IMG/VR virus record: IMGVR_UViG_3300025930_000007
Location: 124,001-188,000 of that record
Direction: 5' to 3' (one strand)
DNA: 64,000 nt
Below the pieces are notes generated by a model. It was given only the letters and a program-made list of their open reading frames with translations, did not search any database and was not told the origin of the DNA. Positions within the stretch are counted from its first letter, which is position 1. Each line of letters starts with the position of its first letter. A program made the position numbers and the translations under genes. Shown here in pieces: positions 2,934 through 37,525 of the stretch.

Positions 2934-2963
2934 TTGATTTCACCCGTAAACGCCGGATATAAT
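2934..2963 (+). promoter_or_regulatory. sigma70-like promoter with GTAAAC box
   Basis: TTGATT-18-TATAAT; GTAAACGCCG in spacer; GTG 6 nt after the -10. Confidence 0.6.
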
Positions 2964-2969
2964 TCACCC

Positions 2970-4031
2970 GTGCCTCAGGACAATGTACTCAATCCTTCCG
3001 AATTCAACGTCGTCTATACCGCACGGAATGAATGGCGGAAGTCGATCGTCCAGAATGGAGGCATCAGCACCCCTCTCGTCACCGAGCTCATCAATCGGAT
3101 GTATGCCGTCTGTAAGATCCCGCCTCCCAAAGTCTATCGATTCGGATCTCCGCTTGCCTGCATCCTCGCCATTCCCTACCTCAGCGGGCTTCATGGCACC
3201 GGCTATTACGAATCCGCGATTCTCAAGATCCTGAAGGGCCCGCAGCTTCACAATCTCGGCGCCCGCTTCAATGGCCGGAATGCCTTTGCTCGACAGGGCG
3301 ATGACCGCTGGGATCGTCTTGCGGACCTGCTCCAGGTGAGCTTGGAACTGCCGATTAAGGCTCAGGTCAACGATTCCTTCATCGAGAACTTCAAGAAGGA
3401 TCTTCTCGAAGCGACGAAGGGGACGTGCAAGGCTGAGAAGATCGACATCCTGACCGATAAGTACCATCGTCTTACTGGCAGAGATGTTGTCCATGAAAAC
3501 TCGCGGATGCAGTGGTGGACGGACATGGCTCGTACGGGACTCTATTGGTGGCCGTATCGCAACTTCGCGGTCGTCTCAGAATATCCTAAGATCTGGCATC
3601 GTGGGCAGCGCGACGTTCCTCATCATGACTCAGAGGCCGCGATCCAGTTCCCAGATGACTACAAGCTCTGGGTCTGGCAGGGTGTTCAGGTGACGGCCCA
3701 GATCATCGCCTTCCCCGAGACGATCACGGTCAGACAGGTCCGCGAGGAGTCCAACTCTGAGGTCCAGCGCATCATGATCTCACGCATGGGCGCCGGGAAG
3801 TACCTCAAGGAAACGAACTGCGAGCTCGTGGACATGGACAGCATGACGCTCCAGGGAAGCGCTCCTCGGGCGCTCATGCGGGACGACCTCGGGAATATGT
3901 GGCTTGTCGGGACGGACGGATCGACGGCCCGCGTATATACTATGGCCGTTCCTTCGGATGTCTCGACCTGCAAGGAAGCCCACGAAAGGATTTGCGGTTT
4001 CGGTGAGAATAGATTGATTGCGGAGGCATAG
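2970..4031 (+). CDS. DUF6745 domain protein
   Basis: WWPY...SEYP...HHDSEAAIQFPDDYKLWVWQGVQV...EESNSEVQRIMISRMG; start moved to GTG 2970 because TTG 2934 is the -35 box. Confidence 0.75.
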   Translation: MPQDNVLNPSEFNVVYTARNEWRKSIVQNGGISTPLVTELINRMYAVCKIPPPKVYRFGSPLACILAIPYLSGLHGTGYYESAILKILKGPQLHNLGARFNGRNAFARQGDDRWDRLADLLQVSLELPIKAQVNDSFIENFKKDLLEATKGTCKAEKIDILTDKYHRLTGRDVVHENSRMQWWTDMARTGLYWWPYRNFAVVSEYPKIWHRGQRDVPHHDSEAAIQFPDDYKLWVWQGVQVTAQIIAFPETITVRQVREESNSEVQRIMISRMGAGKYLKETNCELVDMDSMTLQGSAPRALMRDDLGNMWLVGTDGSTARVYTMAVPSDVSTCKEAHERICGFGENRLIAEA

Positions 4032-4457
4032 ATGAAGCTGAGCCAGGTGACGAACGCGGTCGAAGCCCAGGAAATGATCCAGGAGAAGGCCAAGGAACTG
4101 GCCGTCCAGGACAAGCGCACGGTCCTGAAGATGGAAGTTGGTCAGGTCGTCCGCCAGGGCGACATCTACATCCACCGCGTTCCGAATGATCACGAGCGCG
4201 GACTGGAGCTCAAGACCCGCCAGCTCGCGCTGGGCGAGTCCATGGGCAGCCGGCATATCGCTGAAGCGCCGGCCAAGGTCTGCGAAGGGACCGAAGCCCC
4301 GGGCTGGGCACAGACGGAACTGCTCGGGCCCTGCATCGTCGCCGAGCTTCCGTTCACGGTCTCGCACCCGGAGCACGCGCACATCGACCTTCCGGCCGGA
4401 GTCTATCAGGTGACGCACCAGATGGATGCGCGGACGCGGAAGCGCGTGATCGACTAA
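4032..4457 (+). CDS. conserved phage protein usually paired with DUF6745
   Basis: RQGDI...LALGESMGSRH...HPEHAHIDLPAGVY motifs. Confidence 0.7.
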   Translation: MKLSQVTNAVEAQEMIQEKAKELAVQDKRTVLKMEVGQVVRQGDIYIHRVPNDHERGLELKTRQLALGESMGSRHIAEAPAKVCEGTEAPGWAQTELLGPCIVAELPFTVSHPEHAHIDLPAGVYQVTHQMDARTRKRVID

Positions 4458-5522
4458 CTCCGGAGGAAGGCCTCCACGAATCCACCGAGATCGCCATCCA
4501 GCACCTTGCTGGTGGCCGACGTCTCATACTCCGTCCGATGGTCCTTGATAAGCTGATACGGCTCCAGGACATAGCTTCGGATCTGATGGCCGAAGGAGGC
4601 CTCGAGCTTCGGACGTCGCTCGATCTTGTTCTCCTCAGCCTGCCGCAGCTTGGAAGCCAGGATCTCCAGGGCGTTGACCTTGTTCTGGAGCTGGGAGCGA
4701 TGGTTCTGGCACTTTGCCGTGATCCCGGTGGGCAAGTGCCGGATCCGGACGGCACTCGCCACTTTGTTCACGTTCTGACCGCCTGGACCGCCTGAACAGA
4801 AGGTCTCAATCTCCAGGTCCTTCTCGGCCAGTTCCACGTCCACTTCTGAATAGACTGGCATGACGTCGACGGCCGCGAAGCTCGTCTGCTTCTTGCCGTT
4901 GGCATCAAATCTGGAGACGTGCTGGACCCGGTGGACCCCACGTTCACCCCGGAGTTTCCCATAGGCATAGGGACCGATCACCTCGATCTCCGAATGATGG
5001 ATGCCGGCCGTGGATCCTTCCAGCCGATCTGTGATGGATACCTGGAATCCTTCTCTTTCCAGGTACCGGAAATACATTCGCTCAAGCTGCTCAGCCCAAT
5101 CCATCGCGTCGACGCCGCCGGCGCCCGACTGGATCGTGATGATCGCGTTCCGAAGATCGTCGTTGCCGTTGAAGAGCGCCTGAGTCTCGATCGCTTGAAG
5201 CCTTGCAGCGAGTTTCGGAAGGATCATGGCGATCTCTCCCAGGACCGGGGCGTCCACGACCGGATCCGCCAGTTCAAGCAGCTCGGCCTGGTCTTGAAGA
5301 TCGGTCGTCAGGGTAGTTATGGGGTCGGAGATCTTACGGAGGTGTTTTTGTTCTTCGATCAGAGACCGAGCGGAGTCCGGACGGCTCCAGAAATCTGGAG
5401 CTCCCATCCGCCGCTCAATCTCCAGGATGCGTTCCGAGTGGACATGGATGCTAAAGCGACTCCTCGAGGGCTGCGAGCTTGGTGAGCATGGACCCGAGAT
5501 TCCGCGCGAGTTCGTCCTTCAT
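4454..5522 (-). CDS. prfB: peptide chain release factor 2-like protein made by a programmed +1 frameshift at CTT-TAG-C
   Basis: GGQ (SGGPGGQNVNK, 4775-4783), GAGGVDAMDWA, FGHQIRSYV; 23-codon first ORF from ATG 5522 (SD AAGGAGG) ends in CTT TAG; the +1 frame continues SIHVHSERILEIERRMGAPDFW. Confidence 0.93.
5450..5465 (-). promoter_or_regulatory. prfB-type +1 ribosomal frameshift site with a UAG sensor codon
   Basis: GAGGAG (internal SD)-TCG-CTT-TAG-C; same 3-nt spacing and position as canonical AGGGGG-TAT-CTT-TGA-C. Confidence 0.9.
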
Positions 5523-6148
5523 AAGGACCTCCTTTCGGTTTCAAGTATATCCCTGAGGTTCCAGAGGGCAAGGAACTTCTTGGGATTGGTCTCCTTCCGA
5601 GGCACTTCGATCATGTCAATCGGGTTGCCCAGGTCATAGGGAGTCTGCTGCAGGTCGATCGGCGCGAACTCGCCAGCCGTCATTCCCGTCCGGAAGATGT
5701 TTGGCCAGCCGGGAGCCGTGGTAGAGGCCAGGAAGCGACTGCCGTTCGTGATGAGGGATCTAAGCAGTGGAAGTACTTCGGAATCCGGCAGATGGATCAG
5801 GACGTCCTTGCAGAGCACTAGGTCGGCCTTTTTGGGTTCTATCGAGAGGATGTCGGCATGATGGAATCTGATTGACGGAGTGGCGTATTTCCTCGCAGCT
5901 TCCACCGCGGACCGGACGATATCGTACCCATCATATTCGATGCCGGAGAGATCGACCTCCTTCAGCCAGTGGAAGTCACCGCAACCCAGATCCACGATGG
6001 ACTTGATGTTGAGGCTCCGGATCCAGACCGGAAGCTTCTGGATGATCTCCGCGCATGCTTCGATGGTTGAACCAGGTCCGCAAGGGGTCTCTTTGGATCC
6101 CCAAGCGTTCGACGAGACGATCCGGGAAAAGCGCTCTTCCAGGTTCAT
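5519..6148 (-). CDS. class I SAM-dependent methyltransferase
   Basis: IVDLGCGD motif I, YDGYDIV, ADLVLCKDVLIHL; TGA overlaps the release factor ATG (ATGA); start MNLEERF is 7 nt after TACAAT. Confidence 0.85.
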   Translation of the reverse strand: MNLEERFSRIVSSNAWGSKETPCGPGSTIEACAEIIQKLPVWIRSLNIKSIVDLGCGDFHWLKEVDLSGIEYDGYDIVRSAVEAARKYATPSIRFHHADILSIEPKKADLVLCKDVLIHLPDSEVLPLLRSLITNGSRFLASTTAPGWPNIFRTGMTAGEFAPIDLQQTPYDLGNPIDMIEVPRKETNPKKFLALWNLRDILETERRSL

Positions 6149-6276
6149 CGCCGGGATTGTACACGAAGTCGCTGCATGGGAAAAGCGCTTGAGTCCTAAG
6201 CATTTGAAGGTTAGACTATTGGCGTCGGCCCTCACCCCTCCCGGGGCCTTCCTCTGAAAGGAAGGTCTGTCTCTTC

Positions 6277-6688: not shown

Positions 6689-7015
6689 ATGCCGAAGAAG
6701 AAAGACATTCAAGAACTCGTCGTCGTCTTCGAGAGCATGTACAAGTATTACAAGGGCTGGGTGTTCTCCTACGAGCATCCTGGCGTCTTCGTATATTTCC
6801 AGATGGGCGGTGATCTCGGCGTGTACTTCACCCCCGATTTCGATAAGAACGGTGTCGTCCCGATCCAAGTCACCAACAACGATGGGGAGACACTTAAGGT
6901 TGAGGATGTTTCTTACGAGCACCCCGAACACAACGGCGTTCCATACGAGCAGATCGAGGCCTACAGCCTCTTCAAGATCGTTCGACCACACCTGGAAAGA
7001 TTAGGAGCATGGTGA
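6689..7015 (+). CDS. hypothetical protein
   Basis: 108-aa ORF tightly packed between neighbours. Confidence 0.65.
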   Translation: MPKKKDIQELVVVFESMYKYYKGWVFSYEHPGVFVYFQMGGDLGVYFTPDFDKNGVVPIQVTNNDGETLKVEDVSYEHPEHNGVPYEQIEAYSLFKIVRPHLERLGAW

Positions 7016-7554
7016 TGATCAACCTGAGACTGCAGCGCGCGGGACTGGGTCAAGCGGCTGCCGCGGCATCGAAAGTGGTGGAACTCACCGATGCTCAGTG
7101 GAGCCAGGTGACGGCTGCTCCGAAGGCGGTCGTCAAGTTCTACAGCCCGAACTGCCCGTATTCCCGGGCCTTCGCGCCGATCTATGAGGGTCTGGCCGCG
7201 CAATACCCGGACGTTCTGTTCGCCGCCATCAACGTCGACCAGAGCGTTCAGCAGGCCGGCGTGAACAAGATCCAGATGCTTCCGACCGTGATCTTCTTCG
7301 TGAACGGCGTGGCTAAGGGCAGGATCGACGGGGTACAGGAAGCATCAGACTTCCAGCAAGGGATGGCCACGGCATTCTCTGCCAGCACTCCGGCCGGCGC
7401 ACCGGCTCCGGCGGCCGCCCCTGCAGTGGGGACGCCTCGCGCGGGAACCTTGGTGGAGACTGCGCCTACTTCTCCCCTCGCTTATGTCGCTGGCGGCGCC
7501 GCGGCGGTAGCAGCGCTTGGTACTGCGGCCTATTTCCTGTTCCGTGGAAAGTAA
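7009..7554 (+). CDS. thioredoxin-fold protein (CxxS) with C-terminal membrane anchor
   Basis: VVKFYSPNCPYS, INVD, MLPTVIFFVNG; Ala/Pro linker; hydrophobic tail ending FRGK. Confidence 0.85.
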   Translation: MVMINLRLQRAGLGQAAAAASKVVELTDAQWSQVTAAPKAVVKFYSPNCPYSRAFAPIYEGLAAQYPDVLFAAINVDQSVQQAGVNKIQMLPTVIFFVNGVAKGRIDGVQEASDFQQGMATAFSASTPAGAPAPAAAPAVGTPRAGTLVETAPTSPLAYVAGGAAAVAALGTAAYFLFRGK

Positions 7555-7563
7555 GAGGGCATC

Positions 7564-8100
7564 ATGATCGATCTCAGAGGCGGAACATGGCTCGGCATGG
7601 TGCCGCTCGTCGACCGGCCATCTCTTGGTGCCGGGGCGCAGGATCTCAGCGACGCGGCCTTCAACCAGGTCCTATCGGCGCCGAAGGCGATCGTGGACTT
7701 CTGGAGTCCAGGCTGCCCGCACTGCATGCAGTTCAAGCCGATCTTCGAGGCTGTCGCCTCGCAATATCCGGACATCCTGTTCGCAGCAGTGAACGTGGAC
7801 AACTATCAGCAGAACGCAGCGATCTACCAGATCAGCGGTCTGCCCACGGTCGTCTTCTACCAGAACGGGAAGGAAGTAGACCGGATGGTGGGCGGGGCGG
7901 GGAGCGCCGCAGAGTTCCAGGCTGAGATCGCCAAGGCATTCTCGGGTGGCGGTTCATCGCCTCAAGGCCTGACCCCTGCGGGCGTCTCGATTCCCGCTTC
8001 CAGCGCTCCCAGCACTCTTTCGACGGTCGTGGGCGCTACCGCCCTTGTCGGCGTCCTTGGCGCCGTGTCCTACTTCGGCTACCAACTGCTGAAGAAGTGA
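7564..8100 (+). CDS. thioredoxin (CPHC) with C-terminal membrane anchor
   Basis: IVDFWSPGCPHC, VNVD, GLPTVVFYQNGKEVDRMVG; hydrophobic tail ending LLKK. Confidence 0.88.
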   Translation: MIDLRGGTWLGMVPLVDRPSLGAGAQDLSDAAFNQVLSAPKAIVDFWSPGCPHCMQFKPIFEAVASQYPDILFAAVNVDNYQQNAAIYQISGLPTVVFYQNGKEVDRMVGGAGSAAEFQAEIAKAFSGGGSSPQGLTPAGVSIPASSAPSTLSTVVGATALVGVLGAVSYFGYQLLKK

Positions 8101-14493: not shown

Positions 14494-15330
14494 ATGGTGA
14501 TGGGACCTTGCGGACCGTGTGCTCCAGGAGCAACGCCATTCGGCGGCCCGGCCAGCGGCCTTTGGCCATCCGGCTCGGGCATAGGACCTGCGGCTGGGCC
14601 TGTGGGCCCGATCATCTCGCCAACACCTACTCCTACTCCTATTCCGATTCCGACTCCTATCGGTCCTGCCCCTGTAGAGCTCGGCCTGGCGGCCTTCTTC
14701 AAGATCCTCGCAGAAACGGCGATCACGAACGTTCCGACGTCCAACATCATCGGCAACGTCGGCCTCAGCCCGGCCGCTGCCTCGAACATTACCGGGTTCG
14801 CGCTCGTGCTGGACGGCTCCGGCCAGTTCGCGACATCCTCTCAGGTCGCGTCTCCCGGCAAGGTCTACGCGGCCGACTACGCGCCTCCGACGCCGGCCAT
14901 GCTCACAGCCGCGGTCCTGGCGATGCAGACGGCATATACCGATGCTTCCCTCAGGCCCGCAGACTTCACGAACGTGAACGGCGGCAGTCTCGGAGGTCTT
15001 ACGCTTTCGCCGGGCACCTACAAGTTCACGTCGAACGTCAATATCGCATCGGATCTCACTCTCGCCGGTGGTCCGAATGATACCTGGATCTTCCAGGTCG
15101 ATGGGACCTTCGACATGACGGGTGGTGCGGACATCATCCTGACCGGCGGCGCTCAGAAGCAGAATGTCGTCTGGCAGGTCGCCGGCGCGACGACCATCGG
15201 ACCGGGCTCGATCTTCCAGGGGACGCTGCTCGATCAGACGAGCATCGCGCTGCAGACGGGCGCCGAGGCTCACGGCAAGCTGTATGCCCAGAGCGCGGTG
15301 ACGCTGGACAACAACTTCGTCGACGGCTAA
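14494..15330 (+). CDS. ice-binding-like protein (DUF3494/IBP-1) on a Pro/Thr stalk
   Basis: VELG..F.ILA.T.IT.VP.S.I.GNVGLSPAAA, GKVYAADYAPPTP, AYTDA, LGGLTLSPGTYKF, WIFQV, NVVWQVAG, AQSAVTLD. Confidence 0.92.
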   Translation: MVMGPCGPCAPGATPFGGPASGLWPSGSGIGPAAGPVGPIISPTPTPTPIPIPTPIGPAPVELGLAAFFKILAETAITNVPTSNIIGNVGLSPAAASNITGFALVLDGSGQFATSSQVASPGKVYAADYAPPTPAMLTAAVLAMQTAYTDASLRPADFTNVNGGSLGGLTLSPGTYKFTSNVNIASDLTLAGGPNDTWIFQVDGTFDMTGGADIILTGGAQKQNVVWQVAGATTIGPGSIFQGTLLDQTSIALQTGAEAHGKLYAQSAVTLDNNFVDG

Positions 15331-31521: not shown

Positions 31522-33610
31522 TCACCGCTTGCCTTTTGGCGCGTTTTCCCGGGAAGTGGGGGCCGGGAAGCCACCCTGCCTGATCTGGCCCGCCTGCTTC
31601 AATCTGGCTGCGCTGGCTTTATCCTCGCGCCTCAGGTTGGCCTGCGCGACCAGCGCTTTCGCCCTCAACCTTGCATCCGCGTTGTCCTGCGGGAGATGCA
31701 GGCCGAGCATCCCGGCCATGAGCCAGAGGATCTCGTCGCGTCGGCGGATGGCGAGCTCGCGGGCCTGGATCTCGGCTCTACTCACGGTTCCAGCCACCCC
31801 AACCCGGCTCTGGCGCCGCATCCGAGCCGCGGTCTCCTGGTCGATCGCCTGGCTCATGAGCCAGTGGGCCTCGCTCAAGGCCGTCCGGAAGTCCCGGTCG
31901 CTGATCTCGGGCTTCCGGTCCTCCGCGCTGGCCCTCTCCCTCTTCTCCCTCTCCAGGAACTCGAGGAGCTCCTGAAGATCCCCGGCCATGAGGGCGCTGT
32001 TCGCGTACAGGATATTGCCGTCCCGGAGCCTGATCGACCCATCCATCTGTCTCTCGGCCATACTATCCCTTCCTCCCGCCCTTCTTCGCACACCGGCTGC
32101 AGGTCCCGACCCTCTTCGTCCGGTCGACCTCGGCCCAAGAGCAGCCGCCCGGGCACGCGCGGTCATCCCGGCAGCCGCAGCTCCGGCAGGTCGCCACCGG
32201 GATCCCGACCAGCCCGTCTCCGGACATCCCGAAGGCGATGTAGGTCACCTTCCTCGAGGGCCTGAAGCTCTCCATCGCTTCCTCCTTAAGCGTTGACATC
32301 TATCCCCTCCCCCATCCTTCTCCAATGGGCGTCTGTCCGTACTGGCGCAGGAATGTGTCTATCGTGAAGGTCGTTAGGAACCCCGATCTCCACTCTTTGT
32401 CGGAGTCCCTCTCGGCTGGCATCAGGCTGAAGGCGATCGCATGGACTTCGCGCGTCCATTCAGGCCCCTTCAGCGGAGAAATCGGATTGGGATGGTTAGC
32501 GAACCATCTGATCGCCGCGAGGCCGCCCGCAGCGCACCCCTCTTCCTCTCTGGGGGTATATTTATGGCTCTCCCGGACCAGCGTTGCGAAGTCTTTTTCT
32601 AGAATCTGGTTGAGATACTTGACTACCTGGTGCTTCGGATAATCAGAAAGCTCAATCATCGTCGCCGTCTCAGCCGCCATCAGGCGCTTACGAGGTTTTA
32701 GAGGGCCCAGTTGCCTATAGCGCAGCAGGAAGACTGCAAATACTTTCCCTATAGTCAGGTCCATCTACTTTCCTCCGCCCCGGACCAGCAGGTATCGCTG
32801 GTCGTCGGTGTTCCACCTATAGATCCGTGCGAAATGGCCGTGCTTGATCCTCCACACCTCGGCGATCTCCATGGCCTCGGTCAAGGTCCTCGCCGGCGTC
32901 ACCCGCGTGATCTTGGCCATCTCGATCAGCACCCGGTAGGGATCCCTCTTCATGGTCTCATTCCCCCGGATCCTCAAGTAGCCGAATCGCATTGGAAAGC
33001 CAGCCATTGGCGTCGACGTCGCGCTCTTCGTCTTCATGCCCCTTGTTGCGGCGAGTAGCTCCGAAATCGCCCTGTCGCCTCTCGGAGATTTCGGCACGGT
33101 GCTTTCCGCAAAGCCTGGTCAGCTTTCCGGCCCGGGTCAGCCCTAAGGCGACCTCGCAGACGCGATATTCCTGATCGCACCACGAACACTCAAGCGAGCA
33201 ATTCGTGGGGAACGGCATCCCCGTCACCGAGCTGATGAAGTCGCATCGAGCACACATGATATTTACTTCGAGAACATGACCCTCTTTCCATCGCGCACGA
33301 TCTGGAGGTTGTACTTGACCTTCCCCATCTTGCTGATGTCGTCTTCGGACAGCCCCAGGGCCATCGTGAGCCAGCGCTCAGCCCCTTCCCGGCCCAACTG
33401 GTTCAGGACGGTCAGGTAGCCGAATCCGACGAACTTGGAGATGATCTGAGCCAGCACGATGTAGTCGTAGTTCTCGATCGGCCTTTTCTTGCCTTCCCAA
33501 GACCCCACGATCTTGGAAAAGACCAGCATCGCATCATCACTGGCCTTCTCGGTTGCCTTGAGCAGCGCTTCTTCATTCATGGTTCTTTCCTTTCTATTCC
33601 TTTTCACCAC
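31522..33610 (-). other. cluster of short hypothetical ORFs
   Basis: 31522-32061, 32063-32299, 32300-32764, 33263-33610 and others, head to tail. Confidence 0.55.
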
Positions 33611-34226
33611 GCGGTTTGTAAGGAGTCTCGAACGCTTTCTCGACCGACCATTTCAACCGGTTCAGGCGGTCATAGAGGACATGGTAAGGGATCTTCACAA
33701 TCTTGCTCCAGGCACTCAGCTTGTGATCGACACCCTTGTAGGTATAGAACTTGAGCCCATGCTCCAGTGGCAGATTGACCGCGTCGTCGATGGACATCTT
33801 CTGGTTGACCACCCGGTGCTGCAGCCGCCGATGGTCGACCCCGGTCATCTCGCTGACCTCGGCCAGCGAGCGCATCTGACCGCGGAAGAAGACCATGTGA
33901 TTGACGCGCCTCTTCCGGTTCTGCAGTTTGGGAGGCTCCCACTGGACATTGTCCGGCCAGTAGCCCTTGTCGTTGTCGATCCGGCCCAAGGTGTGCTTCT
34001 TGGTGGGCCGATCCCCGGCCTTCGCCTGGAGTTCCGACTCGAAGACCGCATAGGATTCGCGCCACCGCGGATCCATGCGTATCCCTCGGCTCCCGTAGTT
34101 CTTGAACTTGGGGTGGTTCTTGTTGAAGCAGCGCTGCTTGATCTGCGACCAGATCTGGTAGAGCCGCTTCTGCTTGCCGCCGGCGGTGGCGCCGTGGTAC
34201 TCCAGTTCCTTGGTCTCTTTCTTCAT
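33594..34226 (-). CDS. HNH-type homing endonuclease-like protein
   Basis: YQIWSQIKQRC, YGSRGI, RPTKKHTLGRIDNDKGYWPDNVQW; repeated C-terminal DNA-binding modules. Confidence 0.8.
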   Translation of the reverse strand: MKKETKELEYHGATAGGKQKRLYQIWSQIKQRCFNKNHPKFKNYGSRGIRMDPRWRESYAVFESELQAKAGDRPTKKHTLGRIDNDKGYWPDNVQWEPPKLQNRKRRVNHMVFFRGQMRSLAEVSEMTGVDHRRLQHRVVNQKMSIDDAVNLPLEHGLKFYTYKGVDHKLSAWSKIVKIPYHVLYDRLNRLKWSVEKAFETPYKPRGEKE

Positions 34227-36110: not shown

Positions 36111-36431
36111 CTACTTGACCAGCTTGAATTTATTGAGTGGATCGAGCGGCTTCATCATCCTCATGAGGCTGGCCATCGGATCCTTGCACGGCACCCATTC
36201 CGCGGGAGCTTCCGAGAGAAACTTGAAGTCGGCATCCACAACTCGGGCTGACTCGATGAAGGCCTTGCGAACCTTCTTCCAGCTTCTGGGCCCCTTCTCG
36301 ATCACCTGGGCGAGGTAGCACGGGCCCGGCGCACTCCAGGAGCTCTCGAGGACATCCAGGATCCGCCAGATCGCACGGCCATAGGTGCCGTCGAAGTAGA
36401 TCTTGTCGCCCTTCTTGAATCTAGGCTTCAT
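36111..36431 (-). CDS. hypothetical protein
   Basis: MKPRFKKGD start overlaps the recombinase stop (ATGA). Confidence 0.55.
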   Translation of the reverse strand: MKPRFKKGDKIYFDGTYGRAIWRILDVLESSWSAPGPCYLAQVIEKGPRSWKKVRKAFIESARVVDADFKFLSEAPAEWVPCKDPMASLMRMMKPLDPLNKFKLVK

Positions 36432-37525
36432 GTTCCCATCACGATCTTGGAGAAGTCGGCCAGGCCCTCCGATCCGATGCGCTCCATGCTTCCGAGATAG
36501 ATATCGGTGGTCTTGAGATCGGCATGGCCGAGGCGTTCCTTGATCTCCTTCACGTCCTTCCCAAGTTTCTTCATCACCCTGGCTCCCAGGTGGCGGAGGC
36601 CGTGCATGTGGATGTTCACGATGTCCGGATCTAGGCCTGCCTGGGCGCCGTGGCTCTTGATGAGGGCGTCGAGGGAGGAAGCGGAAAGCGGCTGCTCTCC
36701 TACCTTCATCTTGATGTTCCGGGCCCGGTTGAGGTACTTCCCGGCGTCGGTGGTGGCGATCCACGCGGGCGAGCTCCCCTTCAGGATGCGTCCGGCCGAA
36801 TTCCAGTAGTCCTGGATGGCCTTGATGATCTCGTCGGTAAGGTCGATCAGGATGGGGTGGCCGCCCTTCTGGATGAAGCGGATGTAGGTCTTGCCCGAGT
36901 CCTCCTTGAAGTCGGAGAAGCGGATGCGGGCGATCTCCTGCCGCCGGCGGGTGGTCCAGAGGGTGGTGGTCATGATCGCGTAATCGCGCTTCCCGATGAC
37001 CGTCCGGCGATCGCAGGTCGCGAGGAGTTTGTGGTATTCCTCGACCGTGAACTCGCGTAGGTCATTGGATTTCTCGTAAGCCTGGATCTTGGGGAGGATC
37101 TCCTTGATGGACTTCCACGGATTCGACTGGATGATGGCGGTTCCCATGGTGTCCATGGGGCGCGCGAGGAAGTCGAAGAAGGAGGAGGCGGCCGCACAGT
37201 AGTTCCGGATCGTGCGGTCGGCCAGGCCCTTCTTCCGGAGATGGTCGACGTAGCTGGTGAGGTGGGTGCGTGTCACGGCAACGGGGCTCTGGAGGCCGGT
37301 GGCGGCCAAGAACCCGAAGAATTCGCGGAGCGCGACCTCGTAGGTGGTCCAGCTCGAGGGCTTCTTCATGGCCTTGAAGTCGTAGAGGGCCATGGCCATC
37401 TGCTGGGGCCAATGGGCGAGATTCCCTTTCACGGTGCTCTGCAGGTGGACCAGCTTGTGAGGGACCGGCGAAAGGGGTTGCGGGATAGGGGTCAGCGGGA
37501 AATTCTGTTTCGGCGTCTCGTCCAC
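36428..37525 (-). CDS. tyrosine recombinase/integrase (XerC/D-like)
   Basis: Core-binding domain; RDYAI..TTRRRQEI, QKGG, HGLRH, LGHADLKTTDIY catalytic motifs. Confidence 0.92.
   Translation of the reverse strand: MDETPKQNFPLTPIPQPLSPVPHKLVHLQSTVKGNLAHWPQQMAMALYDFKAMKKPSSWTTYEVALREFFGFLAATGLQSPVAVTRTHLTSYVDHLRKKGLADRTIRNYCAAASSFFDFLARPMDTMGTAIIQSNPWKSIKEILPKIQAYEKSNDLREFTVEEYHKLLATCDRRTVIGKRDYAIMTTTLWTTRRRQEIARIRFSDFKEDSGKTYIRFIQKGGHPILIDLTDEIIKAIQDYWNSAGRILKGSSPAWIATTDAGKYLNRARNIKMKVGEQPLSASSLDALIKSHGAQAGLDPDIVNIHMHGLRHLGARVMKKLGKDVKEIKERLGHADLKTTDIYLGSMERIGSEGLADFSKIVMGT

Follow-up and report, generated by a model that had tools for sequence, protein, structure and literature searches.

Phage-borne RF2-like release factors with a remodelled decoding loop and a UAG frameshift site: predicted readers of UAG

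Which stop codons does a phage release factor read when its own gene is interrupted by UAG? We take up this question for a minus-strand gene of the RF2 type in a stretch of 64,000 nucleotides (nt), positions 124,001 to 188,000 of the IMG/VR virus record IMGVR_UViG_3300025930_000007, which we refer to throughout as the window. The product of this gene is made via a +1 frameshift at CTT TAG C (5456-5450), and its codon-recognition loop departs from that of all ordinary RF2s with which it was compared. An initial annotation, made from the nucleotide sequence alone, had proposed that the loop is an RF1/RF2 chimera that gained UAG recognition, in agreement with the UAG in the frameshift site. Here we delineate the clade to which the factor belongs and argue that it is probably an RF2-derived factor that reads UAG, possibly along with the two other stops, and is autoregulated at UAG.

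The gene begins with a frame-0 leader of 23 codons (MKDELARNLGSMLTKLAALEESL), the ATG of which is preceded by a good ribosome-binding site on the same strand; a homologous leader of 23-24 codons is present in all related loci. Near the end of the leader lies an internal Shine-Dalgarno-like element, GAGGAG, whose spacing to the CTT shift codon is that of bacterial RF2 cassettes, and which is identical in loci with a synonymous divergence above 1. Beyond the shift codon the +1 frame is open from position 5452 and encodes an RF2-like N-terminal sequence, SIHVHSERILEIERR, before continuing into the listed open reading frame (ORF). The translation of this ORF (5407-4454, minus strand; 317 residues) contains the loop GVHRVQHVSRFDANGKKQTSF and the segment SGGPGGQNVNK, confirming the motif HRVQHVSRF at 4933-4907 and the intact GGQ that had been reported. 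Leader and +1-frame body together (23 and 332 codons) yield a full release factor of 355 amino acids. Apart from UAG as the stop, this architecture is that of the autoregulatory frameshift of bacterial RF2.

Several lines of evidence place the protein in the RF2 family. It contains the Pfam domains PCRF (PF03462, E = 1.5e-42) and RF-1 (PF00472, E = 1.8e-34), and the NCBIfam prfB model (TIGR00020) is by far its best release-factor match, at 369.5 bits against a cutoff of 370 for the 317-residue piece only, which is missing the first 38 residues. Two prfA models score 215.9 and 221.6 bits, below their cutoffs of 423 and 400, and the PrfH hidden Markov model reaches only 81.5 bits against a cutoff of 166.65. 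Searches of the PDB recover the E. coli and Thermus RF2 structures with E ~1e-70 (4e-70 for an RF2 entry) over 314 residues; as the decoding region aligns without gaps to the solved RF2, E. coli numbering equals ORF numbering plus 40, and this alignment agrees with the E. coli RF2 loop that had been quoted for comparison. When RF1 serves as the root of the tree, the clade falls within RF2, in line with the earlier view that the protein is built on an RF2 scaffold. The diagnostic characters of the known families are only partly present. The protein lacks the PxT tripeptide of prfA products and has S-x-F in its place; where prfB products have SPF or SPY it has SRF, and where they have Arg203 and Arg213 it has His163 and Lys173. 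The prfB layout of Shine-Dalgarno element, 3 nt and CUU is present, but the stop is UAG instead of UGA (rarely UAA). PrfH is a short factor without domain 1, encoded in an operon with RtcB, whereas the window protein has a full-length PCRF domain. We take the gene product to be a class I peptide release factor that is carried by a phage and descends from bacterial RF2.

The departure from RF2 is focused on the codon-recognition loop. Relative to E. coli RF2 (residues in brackets), the window loop has V161 (L201), Q162 (V202), H163 (R203), S165 (S205), R166 (P206), F167 (F207), K172 (R212), K173 (R213), Q174 (H214) and T175 (T215). A comparison of 64 clade members with 57 ordinary RF2s yields just ten alignment columns in which the residue sets hardly overlap: six lie in the recognition loop and one in helix alpha-5 (Table 1), and the remaining three (187, 232, 268) fall outside these elements. 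His163 and Lys173 are found together in all 64 clade members, and Arg occupies both positions in all 57 ordinary RF2s. The middle residue of the tripeptide is E, A, K, D, R or T in the clade and Pro in just one member, and it is the loss of this Pro, together with H163, K172 and K173, that constitutes the clade signature. The Ser and Phe of the tripeptide, the tip of helix alpha-5, Thr215 and the GGQ motif are retained. The Pro-bearing member (protein P0061 of locus L020) reads ICHISPF, the Pro being either regained or kept, and combines it with His163, the two Lys residues and a TAG shift site; the loss of Pro is therefore not required for the TAG state. The literature bears on three of the altered positions: the SPF tripeptide is reported to be nearly ubiquitous among RF2s (PMC3472500); a proposed role of R213 is to keep out G at the third codon position, and R213I increases UAG reading by RF2 (PMC7530605); and Gln181 of RF1, which aligns with V202, has been described as critical for reading G at that position (PMC6821328).

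Within the clade the loop occurs in two flavours, with covarying residues at positions 162, 164 and 166 (Fisher p = 1e-12). The Gln type, [IV]-Q-H-V-S-[A/K/R/T]-F, comprises 31 sequences including that of the window, and the Cys type, [IV]-C-H-[I/F]-S-[E/D, rarely K/A/P]-F, comprises 33. The Cys type is basal and paraphyletic in the clade tree, which was midpoint-rooted for drawing only; on this rooting Cys may be the older state, and the RF1-like Gln162 would then be a later convergence and not a recombinant RF1 segment. These data also alter the weight of individual residues. The RF1-type VQ, earlier taken as the determinant of UAG reading, is not general: Cys stands at the second position in 33 of the 64 members, and Cys types still have TAG. 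The middle position of SRF varies freely, Arg being just one of the residues that occupy it, and the KQTS segment does not set the clade apart, as the His-to-Gln change occurs in its ordinary sister group too. As for whether a VQ/SRF loop is common among ordinary RF2s, it was not found in them. Other non-canonical loops do occur in rare RF2-like proteins outside the clade (P0184, P0229, P0154, P0262, P0227), their types being SPT with RRQTTF, SKY, IKRISEF..KRETSF and ICRISPY; for the SPT type, relaxed third-base reading would be predicted under a tripeptide rule of codon recognition.

The clade is well delimited. The pattern HR[IV][QC]H.S.FD..KKQTSF is carried by 64 of the 120 best database matches, and the rest of these 120 have the ordinary HRL[VI]R.SPFD..RR[HQ]TSF. 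The 64 members are monophyletic with support of 100/100 on a long stem, and their sister (98 in the Shimodaira-Hasegawa-like approximate likelihood ratio test, SH-aLRT) is a group of ordinary SPF type, whose locus L019 lies among cellular genes and shifts at CTT TGA; clade and sister adjoin the RF2s of Planctomycetota. A profile search of 1.84 billion representatives recovered two clade representatives at 565 and 525 bits, the next match scoring 388 bits, and the combination of His163 with Lys-Lys occurs in none of the next 148 representatives of that search. A scan with clade-specific patterns found no member in one genome each of 185,579 bacterial and archaeal species. Among viral contigs only the phage of the window was found, on two IMG/VR contigs of 266,490 and 236,090 bp; a metagenome scan gave ten loci, and the contigs of other members, the longest of 352,816 bp, encode integrases, sigma factors and HNH endonucleases beside numerous small genes of unknown function. 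The clade is thus known solely from phage-like contigs, with the GC content of member loci ranging from 33% to 66%. The ratio of nonsynonymous to synonymous divergence (dN/dS) among members is 0.10-0.36, with synonymous divergence (dS) often above 1, which indicates that the gene is functional and old. Chance falls far short of explaining the feature, for both the loop type and the cassette recur among the members of a conserved clade on which purifying selection acts.

The shift site was surveyed in the DNA of 17 distinct clade lineages, all of which have the leader, the Shine-Dalgarno-like element, CTT and a stop in the correct register. The stop is TAG in 14 (window/L005/L009, L006/L012, L007, L010, L011, L015, L016, L017, L018, L020, L021, L022, L104, L105) and TGA in three (L008, L013, L106); three more proteins with upstream gene calls in the +1 frame read Phe-Ser at the site, as expected for TTT AGC/T, at the protein level only. 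As a control, 80 RF2 loci across diverse bacterial phyla gave TGA in 56, TAA in four and TAG in none, with no frameshift in the other 20; with the sister L019 added, the 81 ordinary loci comprise 57 with TGA, four with TAA, none with TAG and 20 without a frameshift. These counts accord with published work, which describes some 87% of the RF2 genes of bacteria as having an in-frame UGA (PMC5009743). The contrast of 14/17 with 0/61 ordinary shift sites (Fisher p = 7e-13) means that the agreement noted between the altered loop and the UAG frameshift codon holds at the level of the clade. Moreover, the 15-nt cassette GAGGAGTCGCTTTAG is identical between loci saturated at synonymous sites (dS >1). 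All three TGA lineages have the Cys-type loop and do not form one group, parsimony needing four state changes on the tree. A search for residues that separate TGA from TAG members turned up only conservative or peripheral differences, with no recognition-loop residue exclusive to the TGA members.

The genetic code of the phage and its tRNAs were examined in about 102 kb of the 266-kb contig, namely the 64-kb window and ~19 kb beyond each of its ends. By a simple coding-potential gene call, about 124 ORFs of the window end in TGA (69), TAG (30) or TAA (25), and among the well-supported genes terminated by TAG are the release-factor gene and that of an HNH endonuclease, whose match to its PHROG profile covers the whole length. 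A coding-potential test in the window found same-frame coding on both sides of a stop for TAG in two cases and for TGA and TAA in five each, i.e. no excess for TAG, and about 18 kb past the window ends showed no in-frame TAG excess either; recoding of TAG is accordingly rejected for the examined region. A trio of same-frame ORFs at 32063-33097 on the minus strand was considered as a case of TAG read-through and rejected, for at each junction TAG is directly followed by ATG; we read it as three tightly packed genes, which have no informative family matches. At 58% GC, nothing can be learnt from comparing ORF lengths between genetic codes. The standard code applies in the window, where TAG serves as an ordinary stop. 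TAG stops are also frequent at other clade loci (53 of 149, by crude ORF calls). There is no tRNA gene in the ~102 kb, and in the ~19 kb walked past each window end neither tRNAs nor structural genes were found, the genes there coding for glycosyltransferases, an RlaP-family protein and unknowns. The sole tRNA in any related locus is a tRNA-Pro(UGG) about 2.6 kb upstream of the release-factor gene in a 45%-GC relative (L016, 304-381), which has a gene for ribosomal protein S21 downstream. Laboratory RF2 variants that read UAG also read UGG (PMC7530605) and are toxic, and UGG reading with toxicity to the host had been suggested for the window factor too; this finds no support. Trp makes up 2.1% of the residues in window ORFs, and UGG is thus not avoided.

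Taken together, we posit the following course of events for a UAG-reading factor. Its first part is legible in the sequence: a ribosome translating the 23-codon leader pauses while CUU occupies the P site and UAG the A site, aided by GAGGAG, and then either terminates or slips by +1 (CUU to UUU) to yield the 355-residue factor. In that factor, a pocket rebuilt by the changes of Val202 to Gln or Cys, Arg203 to His and Arg212/Arg213 to Lys/Lys, along with the loss of the SPF Pro, would accept G at the third codon position and allow termination at UAG besides UAA and perhaps still UGA. The UAG of the shift site would restore the feedback of RF2: ample UAG-reading activity would lead to termination in the leader, and too little to frameshifting and more factor. 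The phage would thus have its own self-limiting supply of UAG, or all-stop, termination, independent of host RF1, and, given its standard code with TAG as a frequent stop, it is UAG termination capacity that such a factor would supply. UAG reading would explain both the changes at otherwise invariant decoding residues, including the third-position discriminator R213 and the equivalent of Gln181, and the conserved TAG shift codon. What stands of the initial annotation's claim that UAG recognition was gained is the concentration of the clade's substitutions in the codon-reading elements, R213 to Lys among them; the specificity itself is a prediction from sequence.

Certain observations weigh against UAG reading. 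The specificity is deduced solely from covariation and from the mutational literature on E. coli RF2, and replacing Arg by Lys is a chemically mild change, in contrast to R213I, the substitution that has been studied. The clade keeps the Ser and Phe of the tripeptide, which under the 'tripeptide anticodon' rule, reportedly put forward by Ito et al. in 2000, predicts reading of UAA and UGA. Three clade members have a TGA shift site without any loop residue exclusive to them, so the shift codon is not a strict readout of the loop. TAG was largely inherited from one ancestor and the Fisher test hence overstates independence, the retention of TAG being the stronger argument. Late-gene recoding or a suppressor tRNA might also lie in the other ~164 kb of the 266-kb genome. 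The main rival builds on the retained Ser and Phe and on the TGA members: the factor would have the ordinary RF2 specificity for UAA and UGA, and UAG would uncouple its synthesis from the factor itself. Expression would then be set by a constitutive attenuator or by the activity of host RF1, with UAG as its sensor and more phage RF2 being made when RF1 is scarce or inhibited, and the loop changes would reflect something else, for example escape from an inhibitor or adaptation to modified ribosomes. In experiments with E. coli, +1 shifting at CUU-UAG is indeed efficient (PMC5009743). However, this account leaves unexplained why R203, P206 and R213, invariant in 57 + 80 + 148 ordinary RF2s, are changed exactly in the decoding pocket, and why TAG, absent from all 61 ordinary shift sites, is kept across dS-saturated divergence; moreover, with RF1 in short supply, more UAA/UGA reading is of no use to a phage in which some 24% of the stops are TAG. 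We therefore hold it to be rather unlikely.

The remaining explanations fare worse. Until now, RF1 and RF2 genes in phages have been associated with recoding (bioRxiv 10.1101/2021.08.26.457843), and, with only about 102 kb of the 266-kb contig examined, the gene could be part of a stop-codon recoding programme, like the RF2 of the Lak and Agate phages, in which TAG is recoded; in late genes outside the window TAG would then stand for an amino acid, RF2 would be selected for stricter avoidance of UAG, and the shift site with its UAG would sense the state of the suppressor or of RF1. We regard this as very unlikely in view of the lack of both an in-frame TAG excess and tRNAs in the ~102 kb, the 30 of ~124 ORFs, among them the release-factor gene and the full-length HNH endonuclease, that end in TAG, the resolution of TAG-split same-frame runs into TAG-ATG gene junctions, and the ordinary SPY type of the Lak RF2, the best known among phage RF2s, which has no frameshift. 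A rescue-type or host-shutoff factor acting, as PrfH does, at non-stop signals (sense codons such as UGG, or damaged ribosomes) would fit a decoding loop that departs from RF1 and RF2 alike, and RNA-repair genes are found near the gene in relatives (an RNA ligase in L013, RlaP in L125). Yet the factor is full-length with domain 1, unlike PrfH, and falls far below the PrfH cutoff, the shift site has kept a stop codon, and UGG is not avoided, and we consider this explanation still more improbable. Finally, an accidental in-frame stop in a decaying pseudogene or an assembly artefact would account for the stop and for gene callers annotating the 317-residue piece only; it is effectively refuted by the recurrence of the same cassette in 17 lineages from independent samples spanning 33% to 66% GC, by the dN/dS of 0.10-0.36, and by the RF2-homologous sequence encoded by the leader and across the +1 junction.

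If UAG is read, it is further possible, though we advance this tentatively and lean against it, that we are dealing with a natural omnipotent factor of the bacterial type, which would read UAA, UAG and UGA and spare UGG by means of Gln/Cys202, His203, the loss of Pro206 and Lys212/Lys213. Omnipotent reading would explain the repeated flips of the shift codon between UAG and UGA in the clade, never seen in cellular RF2; as the flips occur in a Cys-type background, at least those members may read both codons, and would if so be omnipotent.

Comparison with known systems brings out the mixed character of the clade. With bacterial RF2 (prfB) it shares the domain architecture, GGQ, the alpha-5 tip, the 23-codon leader, the Shine-Dalgarno element with its 3-nt spacer, CUU_U and a weak +4 base (C/T); it differs in the UAG shift stop, the S-x-F tripeptide with a variable middle, the replacement of R203 by H, R213 by K and V202 by Q or C, and in being found on phage-like contigs only. 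The HRVQ of the window is identical to the RF1 (prfA) loop, as in the RF1-type protein P0268; Q162 falls at the position of Gln181 of Thermus RF1, a reader of G at the third codon position (PMC6821328), Gln being present in 31 of the 64 members, and the middle residue of the tripeptide varies in the clade as it does in PxT. Unlike RF1, however, the window protein has no PxT and is RF2-like in the rest, and half of the clade has Cys. The laboratory RF2 variants with relaxed specificity (E167K, E170K, E172K, D329A/G, R213I) share one altered position, R213, with the clade (PMC7530605), but the clade keeps the equivalents of E167 and D329 (D127 and D289) and changes six loop positions. The release factors of recoded phages (RF2 of Lak and Agate, RF1 of Jade) are likewise phage-encoded class I factors from very large genomes (bioRxiv 10.1101/2021.08.26.457843; PMC7162821); in contrast to the window factor, the RF2 of Lak has an ordinary LVR..SPY loop, lacks the frameshift and is 35-37% identical, and the phage of the window shows no recoding in the ~102 kb. 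PrfH (RF-H) too is a divergent factor of the bacterial type with a non-canonical recognition loop, but it has no domain 1 and is paired with RtcB, whereas the window factor has domain 1 and no adjacent RtcB. We found no report of a UAG shift site in an RF2 gene, or of this loop, in the literature on RF2 evolution, recoding, huge phages, recoded phages and release-factor evolution, in which the phage release factors are ordinary RF1 and RF2 only.

Table 1. The release-factor gene of the window and its immediate neighbours, with the recognition-loop and helix alpha-5 columns that separate the clade from ordinary RF2s
Feature	Positions	Strand	Remarks
Frame-0 leader ORF	5454..5522	-	ATG 5522-5520; 23 codons; last codon CTT 5456-5454
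Internal Shine-Dalgarno-like GAGGAG	5460..5465	-	3-nt spacer to CTT shift codon
+1 frameshift site CTT TAG C	5450..5456	-	CTT 5456-5454; in-frame stop TAG 5453-5451; weak-context C 5450
+1-frame release-factor body	4454..5452	-	332 codons and stop TAG 4456-4454; listed ORF begins at Met 5407
Helix alpha-5 tip GAGGVDAMDW, residues 95-104	5096..5125	-	U1-reading element; ordinary RF2 type
Remodelled codon-recognition loop, G157-F177	4877..4939	-	21 residues
GGQ peptidyl-tRNA hydrolysis motif, residues 209-211	4775..4783	-	Intact; invariant in clade
Class I SAM-dependent methyltransferase, predicted	5519..6235	-	TGA stop overlaps leader ATG (ATGA, 5522-5519)
Convergent neighbours	2934..4457	+	DUF6745 protein 2934-4031; 141-residue protein 4032-4457
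ORF residue 161			Clade I/V; E. coli L201; recognition loop
ORF residue 162			Clade Q or C; E. coli V202; recognition loop
ORF residue 163			Clade H, invariant; E. coli R203; recognition loop
ORF residue 166			Clade any residue; E. coli P206; recognition loop
ORF residue 172			Clade K; E. coli R212; recognition loop
ORF residue 173			Clade K, invariant; E. coli R213; recognition loop
ORF residue 107			Clade Q/R/K; E. coli M147; helix alpha-5

The overlap of the stop of the upstream methyltransferase gene with the leader ATG suggests that the two genes probably form one translationally coupled operon. The methyltransferase has only generic class I S-adenosylmethionine (SAM) matches, with no PrmC-like signature. 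The stretch around and ahead of the leader ATG is conserved at L005, L007 and L022; a methyltransferase directly upstream of the release factor is listed only in L022. On the other side, the pair of genes for a DUF6745 protein and a ~141-147-residue protein is convergent to the release-factor gene also at L013/L014 (L013 6960-8436) and L022 (4649-6135); this three-gene neighbourhood is thus conserved between the window, a 352-kb relative (L013) and a contig of a metagenome-assembled genome (L022). Tandem thioredoxin-fold genes lie at 7009-7554 and 7564-8100 (plus strand), and thioredoxins are near the release factor in relatives as well, as a tandem pair in L022 and a single gene in L018. A tyrosine integrase is encoded at 36428-37525 on the minus strand (phrog_1, E = 2.7e-39), with an integrase near the release factor also in L013 and L021. 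The HNH endonuclease is encoded at 33594-34226 on the minus strand (phrog_3377, E = 5.7e-47), and a protein with a strong match to an ice-binding-like domain (PF11999, E = 4.7e-68) at 14494-15330 on the plus strand of this giant soil phage. In the 352-kb relative, an RNA ligase (PF09414; L013 8517-9539) is two genes from the release factor. Further afield, the RlaP-family nucleotidyltransferase (L125 1095-1820) is about 18 kb past the window end, and upstream of the window (L112 1405-5104) are a 699-residue glycosyltransferase fused to a CmcI-type methyltransferase and a glycosyltransferase-tetratricopeptide repeat protein.

Bacteria keep two overlapping release factors, and laboratory RF2 made to read UAG pays for it with termination at Trp codons (PMC7530605). 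If our reading is true, the clade shows how an RF2 scaffold lacking PxT can be redirected, with its feedback codon moved to UAG, and residues 202, 203, 206, 212 and 213 become specific targets for structural studies and for the engineering of strains that are recoded or have a single release factor. The clade offers a clean natural test of the idea that the shift-site codon of RF2 tracks the specificity of the factor. It would also represent a new route by which large phages seize translation termination, independent of stop-codon recoding.

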